Below, piece after piece: positions 2,054-59,631 of a DNA stretch of 64,000 nt. The stretch lies in NCBI RefSeq assembly GCF_006345805.1, contig NC_043023.1, forward strand, positions 12,958,001 through 13,022,000, read 5' to 3'. This stretch comes from Octopus sinensis. Its lineage: Eukaryota. The translations under genes were made by a program, and so were the position numbers. Each line of letters starts with the position of its first letter. Position 1 is the first letter of the stretch. Under the pieces are notes generated by a model. It made no database searches, was not told where the DNA came from, and saw nothing but the letters and a program-made list of their open reading frames with translations.

Positions 2054-2308
2054 TTACACCTGTGTATGAATACTCAGATGTGTACTTAAGTGGCGTTTTT
2101 GAGAGAATGACTCACCACAGATATCACAATGATATGGTTTTCCCCCAGTATGAATACGTTTATGTTTAGGCAAGTCACTAGTGTGAGAGAATAATTTACC
2201 ACAGATATCAAAATATGGTTTTTCACCTGTATGAATACGTTTGTGACTGATTAAATTGCTATTATCAGAAAATGACTTACCACAGATATCACAGTGATAT
2301 GGTTTTTT
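2054..2308 (-). pseudogene. Out-of-frame ancestral tail of copy A (3 fingers, one lacking its first Cys, ending IHTQV*)
   Basis: Finger codons continue after the A6 run (plus 2303-2308) to the TAA at 2054-2056 shared with paralogs. Confidence 0.85.
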
Positions 2309-3857
2309 CCCCAGTATGTATACGTTTGTGTCCAGTCAAATGAGAACTACTAGAGAATGATTTACCACAGATATCACAATGATATGGTTTTTCACCTGTA
2401 TGAATCCGTTTGTGTTTAGGCAGGTCACTACCGTGAGAGAATGATTTACCACAGATATCACAATGATATGGCTTCTCACCTGTATGAATACGTTTGTGCC
2501 TGTTTAAATTAGAATGCTGGGAAAATGATTTACCACAGATATTACAGTGATATGGTTTTTCCCCAGTATGTATACGTTTGTGACCAGACAAATGACTACT
2601 ACAAGAGAATGATTTACCACAGATATTACAATGATATGGTTTTTCACCTGTATGAATACGTTTGTGATTAGGCAGGTCACTACCCTGAGAGAATGATTTA
2701 CCACAGATATCACAATGATATGGCTTCTCACCCGTATGAATACGTTTGTGCCCGTTTAAATTAGAATGCTGGGAAAATGATTTACCACAGATATTACAAT
2801 GATATGGTTTTTCACCTGTATGAATACGTTTGTGATTAGGCAGGTCACTACCGTGAGAGAATGACCTACCACAGATATCACAATGATATGGCTTCTCACC
2901 CGTATGAATACGTTTGTGCCCGTTTAAATTAGAATGCTGCGAAAATGATTTACCACAGATATTACAATATGGTTTTTCACCTGTATGAATACGTTTGTGA
3001 TTAGGCAGGTCACTACCGTGAGAGGATGACCTACCACAGATATCACAATGATATGGCTTCTCACCTGTATGAATACGTTTGTGCCCATTTAAATTAGAAT
3101 GCTGGGAAAATGATTTACCACAGATATTACAATGATATCGCTTCTCTCCTGTATGAATATGTTCGTGTCTGGTTAAATGGCTATTTTCAGAGAATGATTT
3201 ACCACAGATATCACACTGATATGGCTTCTCGCCTGTATGAATACGTTTGTGCCCGTTCAAAGTAGAATTATGGGAAAATGATTTACCACAGATATCACAT
3301 TGATATGGTTTTTCCCCAGTATGAATACGTATATGACTAGTCAAATGACTACTTGTAGTGAATGATTTACCACAGATATCACAATGGTATAGCTTCGCTC
3401 CTGTATGTGTACGTTTGTGTGTAGGTAAGTCTCCACTGGTAGAGAATGATTTACCACAGATATCACACTGATGCGGCTTTTCCCCAGTATGAATAAATTT
3501 GTGATGAATTAAAGTGCTATTTTGAGAAAATGATTTACCACAGATATCACACTGATATGGTTTCTCTCCTGTATGAGTACGTTTGTGTTTACTTAAGTCA
3601 GCACTTCGAGAAAATGATTTACCACAGATATCACACAGATGCGGCTTTTCCCCAGTATGAATAAATTTGTGATGAGTTAAAGAGCTATTGTCAGAAAATG
3701 ATTTACTACAGATATCACACTGATATCGTTTTTCTCCAGTATGAACACGTCTGTGCCTTCTTAGATTACCACTTTGAGAGAATAACTTACCACAGATATC
3801 ACAGTGATATGGTTTGTCTCTTTTATCAGAGATTTTTGCGTTAGTTGAATTATTCAT
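2289..3857 (-). CDS. C2H2 zinc-finger protein, copy A: 18 tandem fingers, 16-aa leader, ends ...HTGEK-TISL via a +1 frameshift
   Basis: 522-aa ORF of Y-x-C-x2-C-x3-F-x5-L-x2-H-x3-H repeats with TGEKP linkers. Its own promoter is deleted at 6786, so expression is uncertain. Confidence 0.85.
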
Positions 3858-4042
3858 TATGAGAGAATAATTCCGTTATACATATCACAATGATAGTATC
3901 TGTTTCATTTCTATGAATGTTTGCGTTCAAATGCATCAGAGAATAATTAAATGTTATGTTACTTTCATTGGTGATCTTGCTTAATATCTAAAACAGAAGA
4001 TATAGATTGGTTAACTCTTTTGTAAAGTTACTCAAACTTAAC

Positions 4043-4688
4043 CTGTAGGTTCATCATCATCTCTACATTCCAGATGGCAAAAAAAATGTTGCTCTTAATT
4101 CCATCGTCCAGAAGAAATATTTCCCCATCGTTCGTTGAAGAATTTATTTATATAAAGAAGCTGATGTATTGATGAATGTGCCTTATGAATATATGATCTT
4201 CCTTTAATTGATGAAAGTCAATAAAAACATCAGACACACATCTGAATGAAGAAATTTCTTTTAAATCAACATGGTATGATATTCTGAAATAGGAAAAAAA
4301 TTCATTTCTATGAATATATTTGTGTTGCTATTTGCAGAGATTAATTTAATGCTATGCTTCTTTCATCTGTGATTTTGCTTAATATCTAAATCAAGAGGTG
4401 ACAATTGTCTACCCCTTTGTAAAGTCATCCAAGCTTAATTAACCTGTAAAACAATCATCTCCTCTATATTCCAGACAGCAAAGACTTCAAATTGTTGCTG
4501 TTAATTCCATCGTCCAGAAGAAATATTTTGCTGTTGTTTTTCACAGATTTCCTTTATAAGATGAGTTTGATGTATTGATGAATGCTCCGTATAAATATAT
4601 CATCTTCCTTTGGTTGATGGGAGCTGATAAAATATCAGAGGCACATCTGAATGAAGCAATTTCTTTCATATCAACAGGATGTTATATT
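4043..4688 (-). other. Two duplicated putative non-coding 5' exons (about 4444-4688 and 4043-4283); homologues precede C, D, E, A' and, in part, B' and F
   Basis: Polypyrimidine TTTCAG acceptors and CAG|GTTAA donors. The two blocks are mutually homologous, have stops in all frames and contain upstream ATGs. The implied 55-nt intron (3988-4042) is short. Confidence 0.4.
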
Positions 4689-56537: not shown

Positions 56538-58560
56538 TATGAGAGAATAATTTCGTTATACATATCACAATGATAGTATCTGTTTCATTTCTATGAATGA
56601 TTGTGTTCAAATGCATCAGAGAATAATTAAATGTTATGTTACTTTCATTGGTGATCTTGCTTAATATCTAAAACAGAAGATATAAATTGGTTAACTCTTT
56701 CGTAAAGTTACTCAAACTTAACCTGTAGGTTCATCATCATCTCTACATTCCAGATGGCAAAAAACAAGAGGTGACAATTGTCACCCCTTTGTAAAGTTAT
56801 CCAAGCTTAATTAACCTGTAAAACAATCATCTCCTCTATATTCCAGACAGCAAAGACTTCAAATTGTTGCTGTTAATTCCATCGTCCAGAAGAAATATTT
56901 TGCTGTTGTTTTTCACAGATTTCCTTTATAAGATGAGTTTGATGTATTGATGAATGCTCCTTATAAATATATCATCTTCCTTTGGTTGATGGGAGCTGAT
57001 AAAATATCAGAGGCACATCTGAATGAAGCAATTTCTTTCATATCAACAGGATGTTATATTCTGAAATAGAAAAAAAAAAGAAGCAGTGAGATAAAGAGAA
57101 TCATTAAACGACATAGTAATTCAACATTGCAAATCTTACAACATCAACACTGTCATCCATTTAATGTCTATGTTTGCAGGGGTCAGAATCCATTGAGGCA
57201 TTGAAACTTTTACAACATTCTGTATAGAGATTTCTCTATTGTTCTGCCATGGCAAAAATTTTGGTGAAGGTTTAAATAAAATTTTGAAAAGGATGGAACC
57301 AATCTACTTCAAGATTCACTACAAATATATTTGTATAAACACACACACATATATGTATATATAATAATACATATATATGCGTAAATACATACGTATACGT
57401 ACATACATTTTTGTTTATATTTGCGAGTGCCCGTTCTGCGTATTTTATTTTTTAGTATAAAATAGTTTAAAAAAATAGATTAATCGTTCTAATTTTCTCT
57501 GGTACTATTTAAAAAGTGTGGTCCCGGTGCGCGCACTCGCGCTAGTTAGTTGTGATTAGTCGATCCTACAACGACTACCTAGCAAAGTGAATAAAACACA
57601 AAATAAATAATTTCTTTACACAAAGTAAATAATCTTTTGGCGATCCTTCGGTATAGGTACCGTAAGTGGCTTTGATTACATTTCTGAAGATAACAGAAAC
57701 CCTTTTCTCCCACCCCTAACACAAACCTTAACCATAACCCCCCATATATATAAAAAAAAAAGACACTTTCTTGAAATGTATCTGGTACTTCCGGTACCTA
57801 TACCGAAGTTACGATCATTTTTTTAAAACAAAGTAAATAATACAAAAATACAAAGTAAGGATCGACTAGTCACGACTAGCTAGCATGCCCACCGCGACCT
57901 CTCTTCTTAAATAGTACCCTTATATGTTTGTTTATATTCGCGAGTGCCCGCTCTCCGTATTTTATTTTTTAGTATAAAATATTTAAAAAATAGATTAATC
58001 TTTCTAATTTCCTCCATACTTTATGTATTCTGGATATATTTCCCATTTCCTAACTTTTTCTCACAAGTAAGCGTCATTATCTTGGAGAGGTGCGCGGTAC
58101 TACTAGCGAACAGTGGCCCCGGTGCGCGCACTCGTGCATCCGTGCAAGCTAGTCGTATGTAGTCGATCCTACGACTTTTTAACCCTAACCTTAGTTTGTT
58201 TACAAAAATAACGTATTTACTTAGTTTTTAAATTTGTAGGATCGACTACTTACGACTAGCAAGCGCGGATTCGCTAGTGCGCGCACCGGGACCACTGTTC
58301 GCTAGTACTACCTTATCATTATTGGTATTATCATCATCATTACAGCCTTAAAATAAATCTTTGTCAACTTACCGTTTTCAGATACAAACAACGAGTCAGT
58401 GATCGTTAATTAAGCACCTTAATTAATTAATTAAGGAAAGTTATATCCCTTTATATGGTTATAGTTCTTCAATTTTCTATGACTGGTTCGCTTCGTTCCG
58501 GTGTCTTCTTTGTCCCATTCTGTCAACGATTTTACCTTGAAGGTAATATAGAATATATAC

Positions 58561-58736
58561 ACTCACATATTCTAATCTACGACCGTTTCCAGCGCACGAA
58601 CTGGACCCCGTCGCAGACACCGAAAGAAAGAAGGCATCTTTGACTTATATCTTCCTGATGTGACGTCAGGCCGTTGCACTTCCGATCCGTTTCTGACGTC
58701 ATTTTCTCTCCTGTCCAATCATTGTCCTTCCTTCAC
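58561..58736 (-). promoter_or_regulatory. Putative promoter of copy F, directly adjacent to inverted copy G
   Basis: Same module, with no MITE module upstream. Confidence 0.6.
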
Positions 58737-58843
58737 TTTTTAAGTTCCACTCTTATAATAGTGTTTCAACGGAACATAAACATATTTATATAAATGAGAA
58801 AAACATTAACATAGTGATACGTATGACAAATTATCCTCTCATA

Positions 58844-59631
58844 ATGAATAATTTAGCTTAACCAAAAAACCCTGATACAAGAGAGAAATCATATTCTTGT
58901 AATATCTGTGGTAAATCATTCTATCAAAGGAGTGAAGCCTTCTCATACAGGAGAGAAGCCATTTTATTGTAATATCTGTGGTAAATTATCCTCTGTAAAT
59001 TGTCATTTGACTAGGCACAGACGTGTTCATACTGGGGAAAAACCGCATCCATGTGATGTCTGTGGTAAATCATTCTCTCGAAATAGTGAGTTAACAATAC
59101 ACAAACATATACATACAGGTGAGAAGCCATATCACTGTGATATCTGTGGTAAATCATTCTCTTTTAATAGCAATTTAATCAGTCACAAACATATTCATAC
59201 AGGAGAGAAGCAATATCATTGTGATATCTGTGGTAAATCATTTTCTCAAAAAATTGATTTTACTGTCCATAAACGTATTCATACTGGGGAAAAAACCATA
59301 TCATTGTGATATCTGTGGCAAATCATTCTCCCAAAGTAGTGACTTGCCTAAACACAAACGTAGTCATACAGGTGAAAAACCATATCATTGTGATATTTGT
59401 GGTAAATCATTCTCTTACAGTTGTGACTTGCCTAATCACAAACGTAGTCATACAGGAGAGAAGCCATATCATTGTGATATTTGTGGTAAATCATTGTCTG
59501 TTAGTAGTTCGTTAACACAACACAAACGTATTCATATAGGAGAAAAACCATATCATTTTGATATCTGTGGTGAGTCATTCTCTCAAATACGCCACTTAAG
59601 TACACATCTGAGTATTCATACACAGATGTAA
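58844..59631 (+). pseudogene. Inverted, more diverged zinc-finger copy G
   Basis: The homologous ATG at 58844 is followed by TAA at 58859. Finger 1 carries a deletion, there is an A6 frameshift at 59290-59295, and it ends IHTQM*. Confidence 0.85.

Follow-up and report, generated by a model that had tools for sequence, protein, structure and literature searches.

The cluster and its genes

The window analyzed here is a 64,000-nucleotide stretch of the Octopus sinensis genome (NCBI RefSeq assembly GCF_006345805.1, contig NC_043023.1, positions 12,958,001 to 13,022,000 of the forward strand), with a G+C content of 36.7% and no runs of N; all coordinates below are positions within it. Judged by its sequence, the window is a young, lineage-specific tandem cluster of Krüppel-type C2H2 poly-zinc-finger genes together with relics of such genes. 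An earlier note on this DNA had proposed that the finger arrays of these genes are permutations of a shared cassette library, shuffled across the cluster by crossover or conversion inside near-identical flanks and with broken copies as possible donors. Our results point instead to ordinary gene-family evolution, which we consider very probable: the arrays would share an ancestral finger order that has been reshaped by insertions and deletions of whole fingers, by a few short swaps, and by selection on DNA-contact residues.

Tandem Repeats Finder located nine arrays with an 84-bp period in the window, eight of them on the minus strand and one an inverted relic. A six-frame scan for the pattern C-x2-C-x12-H-x3-H returned 137 matches, every one inside these nine arrays and at 84-bp spacing. 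We cut the arrays into 84-bp units starting two codons ahead of the first cysteine; the consensus unit then ends in HTGEKP, and the codons of the TGEKP(Y/H) linker are kept at the amino-acid level. A full gene consists of a single coding exon, an open reading frame (ORF) with a 16-residue leader followed by 15 to 21 fingers on TGEKP linkers. The arrays are as follows:

2054-3857, minus strand: array A, 21 units; ORF of 18 fingers and 522 amino acids; private two-finger amplification
6842-8540, minus strand: array B, 20 units; truncated at the 5' end within the leader
15527-17331, minus strand: array C, 21 units; stop codon in finger 13; unit 20 scrambled
24125-25423, minus strand: array D, 15 units; stop codon in finger 12
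31756-33222, minus strand: array E, 17 units; stop codon at the junction of fingers 16 and 17; ORF of 464 amino acids
41251-42883, minus strand: array A', 19 units; sister of A and with its +1 frameshift
45744-46520, minus strand: array B', truncated sister of B; 6 units, B13 to B17 and B19
55149-56537, minus strand: array F, 16 fingers; ORF of 462 amino acids
58943-59631, plus strand: array G, an inverted, degenerate relic of 7 to 8 fingers with a frameshift; best unit matches 69 to 79 of 84

Only F has an uninterrupted ORF from the leader through the conserved last finger. The ORF of A is closed by a +1 frameshift after finger 18, and A' has the same frameshift; B carries a frameshifting 16-bp insertion between fingers 14 and 15 that is common to B', and its first finger is preceded by just 26 bases of leader and then by a satellite monomer. 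Because the lesions of A and B recur in their sister copies, they are inherited and not random sequencing errors. Array C has private amplifications of its QISHLTQ and RRADLTE fingers.

The finger spacing, the linker, and the protein profiles all place these genes among the Krüppel-type C2H2 poly-zinc-finger families, and the predicted proteins would be expected to bind DNA. A Pfam scan of the F ORF matched PF13465 (zf-H2C2_2) with 446 bits over 15 stretches and PF00096 (zf-C2H2) with 282 bits; it returned zinc-finger-type families only, with no KRAB (PF01352), SCAN, or BTB domain in the ORF (small upstream exons were not searched) and, with the same limit, no SET match. Beyond the zinc-finger ORFs, the window contains no ORF of at least 150 amino acids, and an Rfam scan of it gave no match. 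When the leader and first fingers were used as a query, the top named matches were zinc-finger protein (ZNF) models of O. sinensis, O. vulgaris, and O. bimaculoides at 67 to 74% identity; the models P0122 and P0135 begin with the same layout as the cluster genes (MNxxTxxK...). The closest relatives by architecture are thus octopod ZNFs, as expected of a lineage-specific C2H2 expansion in octopods. An expansion of this kind was reportedly described by Albertin and colleagues in 2015, a study that PMC10547256 cites. A homology search with the whole F protein found only vertebrate poly-ZNFs at 50 to 60% identity and is uninformative on origin. We looked up the four ORFs of A, E, A', and F and found no exact sequence on record for them in public assemblies.

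Finger order and changes in the units

Average-linkage clustering of the 84-bp units, a check of the kind that the earlier note had proposed, groups them by type across genes and not by gene. The types are a first finger N (xSxNLRR), T (xNSxLTH), R (RSADLPK), K (TSSDLNK), P (HSSDLPK), and a last finger Z (QKRHLSS). Every helix string quoted in the earlier note proved correct, including the fingerprints of D (KSGNLRR, ENSNLIH, RSADLPK, TSSDLNR, RNSNLIS) and of F (QSCNLRR, DNSTLTC, ENSTLTH, RSADLPK, RSADLPK, QSSSLTD), and the conserved first finger (xSxNLxR) and last finger (QxxxLSxH) hold in all full arrays. The helices said to recur in different genes do so, and we place them at B7 and E15 (EIGTLTG), B11 and C17 (QRADLPR), B18 and C19 (RSNHLSV), A10, A12, and B19 (HGSDLPN), and A8 and F14 (ENSHLTR). 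When fingers from different genes have helices no more than one residue apart, their backbones differ on average at 4.8 of 63 bases, compared with 9.8 of 63 for other pairs; because near-identical helices sit in closer backbones, their recurrence reflects shared descent rather than chance. The two EIGTLTG fingers, B7 and E15, are mutual best backbone matches. We considered RSNHLSV and ENSHLTR as candidates for identical helices in unrelated backbones and rejected both: they are ordinary same-type fingers, and their high backbone counts are largely explained by a linker indel in C19 and by changes clustered in the H-x3-H segment in A8 and F14.

The order of these fingers is largely shared. We paired reciprocal-best fingers between non-sister arrays, which gives 15 array pairs. 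The pairs are collinear in six of six cases between D and F (P = 0.0014) and in eight of nine between E and F (P = 0.0003), the ordered D-F pairs being D1-F1, D2-F3, D3-F4 (identical at 84 of 84 bases), D4-F8, D14-F15, and D15-F16. In 13 of the 15 array pairs, at most one reciprocal-best finger falls outside the longest collinear subset; in the remaining two, A-D and B-E, 5 of 7 are in order. After removal of the first and last fingers, the interior fingers show 98 concordant against 27 discordant order relations, a result reached by none of 20,000 permutations (P < 5e-5). The arrays are therefore not permutations of a library, and the fingerprints of D and F, which had been called almost unrelated, pair at six fingers in the same sequence. 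Likewise, given that the order is conserved, the differing finger numbers at which a helix recurs (B7 and E15, for instance) result from insertions and deletions of whole fingers; what had been taken for non-homologous positions are collinear ones with shifted numbers. The clear exceptions to the shared order are two internal units of the first-finger type, C7 and E12, the latter followed by the R-type E13.

The individual fingers that bear on gain, loss, and exchange are these:

2889-3053, minus strand: fingers A10 and A11, present only in A and missing in A'; a copy of A12 and A13 with a 3-bp deletion at the junction
16696-16779, minus strand: finger C7, an internal first-finger-type unit (QSFNLRR)
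32755-32838, minus strand: finger E5, a chimera; bases 1 to 60 as in E3 (T type, QNSTLTH), bases 61 to 84 as in the R-type F4/D3
32671-32754, minus strand: finger E6, a probable chimera; R-type backbone with a helix patch at bases 35 to 48 of P type (as in B6 and E14), including a synonymous TTG codon
32167-32250, minus strand: finger E12, an internal first-finger-type unit (QSCDLRR), followed by R-type E13
55986-56069, minus strand: finger F6, a probable chimera; backbone as in F11 (0 of 63 bases differ), with a B9-like patch in place of 9 of the 11 bases at positions 34 to 44

Gain and loss of units by unequal exchange in 84-bp register, part of what the earlier note envisaged, is borne out at several places. 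Array A is two fingers longer than A' through the A10-A11 indel, and a 357-bp exact match runs from A12 into A'10. B' is without B1 to B12, B18, and most of the last finger, and the units that it retains match those of B at 83 to 84 of 84 bases. Array D contains an internal block duplication, as claimed, although it spans six fingers and not four: D2 to D7 (24788-25291) correspond to D9 to D14 (24200-24703), with unit matches of 82, 83, 84, 80, 78, and 79 of 84. The first three units of the block are more alike than the last three (3 of 252 against 15 of 252 bases differ, P = 0.0066), which hints at a second event or at conversion. The private two-finger amplifications in A and C complete the series; recent duplicates within arrays match at 82 to 84 of 84 bases overall, and those in A and C at 82 to 83. 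Since the sister arrays remain collinear at about 2% divergence, whole-finger change must be slow, and several events per array pair at 3 to 5% divergence fits that pace.

Exchange also occurs at a scale smaller than the finger. Finger E5 is a chimera produced by short-tract exchange between two finger types: it is E3-like at 11 diagnostic sites and F4/D3-like at 7, with zero mismatches on both sides (about 3e-5, Fisher's exact test). Because E5 stands where the shared order has an R finger, an R-type unit must have received a T-type helix from the finger two units upstream. E6 and F6 are probably chimeras as well. We kept only these three, each having a compact patch in a unit that is otherwise identical or near-identical to one parent; a two-parent mosaic scan taken at face value was rejected because, with about 108 candidate parents, gains of 3 to 6 are expected from overfitting. 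At a larger scale, C7 matches B1 at 80 of 84 bases and C1 at only 74 of 84, so that it is nearer to the first fingers of other genes than to that of its own, and this suggests that array C may have arisen when a six-finger head fused to a full array that begins with a first-finger-type unit.

We found no trace of longer transfers between genes. No exact match exceeds 120 bp between non-sister arrays, the longest being 112 to 120 bp, whereas flanks at similar divergence contain exact runs of 160 to 410 bp; recent conversion spanning several fingers is therefore not in evidence between the genes. The identity of D3 and F4, which lies in a 120-bp exact run, was considered as a conversion tract and rejected, as a run of this length is expected about one to two times over 15 array pairs at 4.6% divergence. 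The proposal that the broken copies B, B', C, and G may act as donors likewise finds no support: none of them could be identified as the source of a finger in an intact gene, and the sole exact donor, E3, lies in the same array as E5. Nothing marks B' or G as a donor, B' being just B in truncated form and G an older inverted relic. Nor are the arrays homogenized in the manner of PRDM9: fingers of one array are no more alike in their backbones than fingers of different arrays (identity 0.848 in both cases, permutation P = 0.45), and for 64 of 108 units the nearest neighbor lies in another array. What stands of the proposed shuffling system is that some exchange takes place between finger types, with E5 as at least one clean case; a cluster-wide system does not accord with the conserved order and the missing long tracts.

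Flanking DNA and DNA-contact residues

The contrast between near-identical flanks and dissimilar arrays had been drawn mainly from D and F, for which two parts of the 3' flank have to be told apart:

20183-23192, no strand: young D/F tract, the distal 3' flank of D; partner from 51201, collinear over about 3 kb; 34 of 3000 bases substituted, non-CpG divergence 0.85%
23193-24124, no strand: array-proximal 3' flank of D; non-CpG divergence from F 3.46%; 45 of 1000 at all sites over 23193-24192

With the arrays masked, the 3' flank of D (20183-24118) is indeed 97.3% identical to that of F (51201-55148) over 3958 bp. Near-identity describes the distal tract, which stops about 0.9 kb short of array D, but not the DNA adjoining the arrays, where non-CpG divergence is 3.0 to 3.5% (distal against proximal 3' flank, Fisher P = 3e-7; the 5' flank has 77 substitutions in 2000 bases at all sites and 3.0% non-CpG). 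The backbones of the six orthologous D/F fingers differ at 14 of 378 bases (3.7%). Because the proximal flank is about as diverged as the orthologous fingers, the arrays sit in equally diverged DNA, and the contrast disappears once the young and the older flank are separated. The near-identical tract reads as a more recent duplication or conversion in which the arrays were not involved.

Relatedly, the 5' flanks are common to all paralogues and not to D and F alone. They diverge in a star-like manner by 1.5 to 4.4% substitutions, with D-F among the largest values. On its 5' side F is closest to E, with 1.5% divergence in the proximal flank and the most shared fingers. Quartet comparisons back a grouping of D with F only in the last finger and the 3' untranslated region (4:0:1, 6:1:1, and 8:1:1); further 5', 0 to 1 of about 12 informative sites do so (Fisher P = 0.01). 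We therefore set aside the idea of D and F as sister genes, the 5' flank and 5' fingers giving no support. Since the 5' side of F falls with E but its 3' end with D, the genes are mosaics, as would be expected if paralogous arrays act as recombination substrates during tandem expansion. The corresponding comparison for A and A', which had also been proposed, comes out differently: the arrays are collinear and differ at 18 of 1512 bases and by one two-finger indel, with flanks at 2.05 to 2.10% substitutions. Their units match at 78 to 84 of 84 bases, and at 82 to 84 in all but the last finger; B and B' are collinear at about 99% identity.

Three further observations concern the flanks. CpG sites diverge four to seven times faster than non-CpG sites between paralogous flanks (5.7% against 0.85% and 20.7% against 3.46%), an excess seen in the A/A' and D/F flanks (1-2053, 3861-6685, 20183-24124, 25424-28031, and their partners) and consistent with methylation-driven decay of CpG in the germ line. 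Every copy of the shared 5' flank has within it an old tandem duplication of about 400 bp with about 75% identity (3904-4299 and 4301-4704, and likewise upstream of C, D, E, and A'), of which F appears to keep only part, with an apparent deletion of about 300 bp. Further out (28623-30177), the 3' flank of E matches the D/F type, and from about 170 bp past the E stop codon it has about 1.4 kb (30177-31584) that is absent from D and F, where the corresponding stretch measures about 650 bp; this E-specific segment appears to be an insertion or replacement.

We took helix positions -1, 2, 3, and 6, which are codons 12, 14, 15, and 18 of the unit, as the contact residues. Reciprocal-best finger pairs differ at these codons by 135 replacement changes and 1 silent change, a proportion of differences of 0.145 at replacement sites (pN); in their backbones, pN is 0.027 and the proportion at synonymous sites (pS) is 0.078. 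Counting variants within finger families, which lessens the non-independence of finger pairs, gives 37 additional amino acids and 2 additional synonymous codons at contact positions against 55 and 48 in the backbone (P = 1e-6). From these counts we infer that diversifying selection caused the replacement excess at contact residues. Much of the helix difference that had been put down to exchange is point substitution at these residues.

The contact codons are also poor in synonymous change: reciprocal-best pairs have one difference in 208 synonymous sites there, compared with 8 to 11% in backbone and non-contact helix codons, and several synonymous codons are in use at contact positions across the cluster. 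Choosing pairs by similarity could contribute to this scarcity, and so could helix patches that move as blocks. A stronger form of the latter idea, in which targeted and frequent short-tract swaps of the helix-coding segment are a distinct mode of specificity change in octopod arrays, seems to us very improbable. If it were true, ready-made recognition helices would move between backbones, and the 2 synonymous against 37 replacement variants would be its footprint.

History of the cluster and comparison with known systems

The shared finger order, the whole-unit indels, the E5 chimera, the measured divergences, and the replacement excess at contact codons are direct observations; a history that would account for them, with its recombination steps reconstructed, can be outlined as follows. 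A single ancestral gene would already have had an array of diverged types in the order N, T, R, K, ..., P, Z. Segmental duplication of a repeat of about 8 kb would have given the paralogues, now at about 3 to 5% divergence, and a later copy of the A-B module would have given A'-B', at about 2%. In-register unequal exchange or slippage may then have duplicated or deleted blocks of one to six fingers, while rare out-of-register exchange or fusion may have put first-finger-type units inside arrays (C7 and E12), and short-tract exchange of about 15 to 60 bp between finger types would have produced the chimeric fingers. Diversifying selection would have targeted the contact positions of the helix (-1, 2, 3, and 6). 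The flanks would also have a history separate from that of the arrays, the 3-kb piece of the D/F 3' flank having been duplicated or converted later.

The model of the earlier note, cluster-wide cassette shuffling fed by broken donors that leaves permuted arrays in constant flanks, is one that we judge decidedly improbable, although several of our results lean its way. Units cluster by type across genes, with the majority of nearest neighbors in other arrays; chimeric fingers exist, and C and E hold first-finger-type units in their interior; and the donor of the E6 and F6 patches could be another gene, B6 being exact for E6 and B9 closest for F6. Set against these are the conserved finger order, the collinearity of sister arrays across about 2% divergence, exact matches between non-sister arrays that fall short of those in the flanks, and array-adjoining flanks that are as diverged as the orthologous fingers. 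In addition, the only exact donor lies within the recipient's own array, and the broken copies are nearest to no finger of an intact gene beyond type-level similarity. A different reading would make the arrays much older than their flanks, with the flanks homogenized by concerted evolution and the arrays kept diverse by selection. The star-like 5' flanks, in which A and A' are scarcely closer than non-sisters, are in keeping with it, and the younger D/F tract indicates that flank conversion or re-duplication occurs. The backbone pS of reciprocal-best pairs also exceeds the flank divergence; it is perhaps inflated by pairs that are paralogous rather than orthologous. The D/F finger backbones, by comparison, have diverged about as much as the adjoining flank (4.5% at all sites), and unit indels roughly track flank divergence, with one or two events at about 2% and several at 3 to 5%. 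We therefore regard old arrays in homogenized flanks as unlikely, and a shared ancestral order modified by indels, short swaps, and selection remains the reading that we prefer.

Several points weigh against this preferred history. About 22% of the interior order relations are discordant, the reciprocal-best pairing covers just 4 to 9 fingers per array pair, so that the history of the other fingers rests on weaker similarity, and 84-bp units hold little phylogenetic signal. For the selection component, the finger pairs behind pN and pS are not independent and their choice by similarity biases the counts, the ratio of replacement to synonymous change at contact codons is above the neutral ratio only at P = 0.018, and relaxed constraint could explain part of the excess. 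With F alone uninterrupted, some or most of the copies may be pseudogenes, possibly decaying. Finally, long repeats of 95 to 97% identity could mimic mosaicism through mis-joined reads, in which case the chimeric fingers, the first-finger units inside arrays, and the young tract shared by D and F would be assembly artifacts. This last idea is hardly credible, given that the independent copies A' and B' repeat most of the unit structure as well as the A frameshift and the 16-bp insertion in B, that the window has no N runs, and that the chimeric fingers are in frame and at exact 84-bp spacing.

The history that we favor has close parallels in vertebrates. In lineage-specific vertebrate poly-ZNFs, the contact residues are the main targets of positive selection, the number of fingers differs in nearly all recent paralogues, mostly by deletion or duplication of whole fingers, and short gene-conversion regions occur in a few genes (Emerson & Thomas 2009, PMC2604467). 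Vertebrate clusters of the KRAB-ZNF type (PMC2604467; Nowick et al. 2011, PMC3126818) are, like the octopus cluster, composed of tandem young paralogues; all four features reported in PMC2604467 are present in the octopus cluster, and diverse old fingers within arrays are common to both. The octopus genes differ in having only a 16-residue leader and no KRAB, SCAN, or BTB match in the F ORF, in belonging to a mollusc, and in that most copies have a premature stop or frameshift. An invertebrate cluster would thus diversify with the toolkit of vertebrate KRAB-ZNFs, namely whole-finger indels, occasional chimeras, and contact-residue selection. This supports common rules of poly-ZNF diversification across animals and reveals no new diversification system; the cluster also supplies concrete, datable events for measuring rates.

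C2H2 genes have expanded massively in octopods, where they form tandem clusters along the chromosomes (Holzinger et al. 2025, PMC12513265; the Amphioctopus genome paper, PMC9795677). The genes described here agree in their tandem clustering and share their leader and CDICGKSFS backbone with the Octopus ZNF models. These papers deal with genes as wholes and with their expression, and PMC12513265 apparently does not describe finger-level dynamics, so a finger-level description may be new for the cephalopod lineage. The likeness to PRDM9 (Oliver et al. 2009, PMC2779102) consists of the 84-bp unit, in-register gain and loss of units, and hypervariable contact residues. The differences are that the octopus arrays form a multi-gene cluster rather than one hypervariable locus, have no PR/SET match in the F ORF, and show no within-array homogenization; because of the latter, the analogy is limited to the 84-bp register and the variable contact residues. 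With chicken immunoglobulin pseudogene conversion and trypanosome variant surface glycoprotein (VSG) switching, the likeness is only the idea of broken neighbors as donors, short patches having been copied between fingers in the octopus. Unlike those templated donor systems, the octopus cluster has no acceptor/donor asymmetry, no tract from a broken copy, and a conserved order, and no programmed process was seen in it.

The window is also rich in other repeats. Satellite arrays with a 145- to 148-bp period lie at 35602-37939, 49115-51200 (plus strand), and 61958-63866 (inverted), with 13 to 16 copies and 96 to 98% matches, and single monomers stand at the equivalent point of other repeat units, for example at about 8558-8727 directly upstream of array B. 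Because the monomers occupy equivalent points, the satellite is apparently part of the repeat of about 8 kb, with amplification in only some of the copies. Another tandem repeat, G+C-rich and with a 62-bp unit (GGTGCTTTTACGTGCCACCGGCACGGGGGCC...), matches no Rfam family; it occurs at 9868-10286 and 15162-15307 and, in diverged form, at 23525-23912 and 54555-54942. Its largest copy (9868-10286) is situated upstream of B, between B and C, and the other three lie a few hundred bases downstream of C, D, and F. Octopus C2H2 genes have been linked in the literature to flanking tandem repeats, and here too the genes have satellite and other tandem repeats beside them. Between F and G (58736-59800), the orientation of the genes is reversed. 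The 3' flank of G contains the reverse complement of a 21-bp repeat found downstream of A (59727-59784 and 1480-1537), and G is on this ground an inverted copy with an A-type 3' flank. Two other intergenic tandem repeats, at 13901-14457 (188 bp) and 60645-61157 (174 bp), have about three copies each with 91 to 94% matches.

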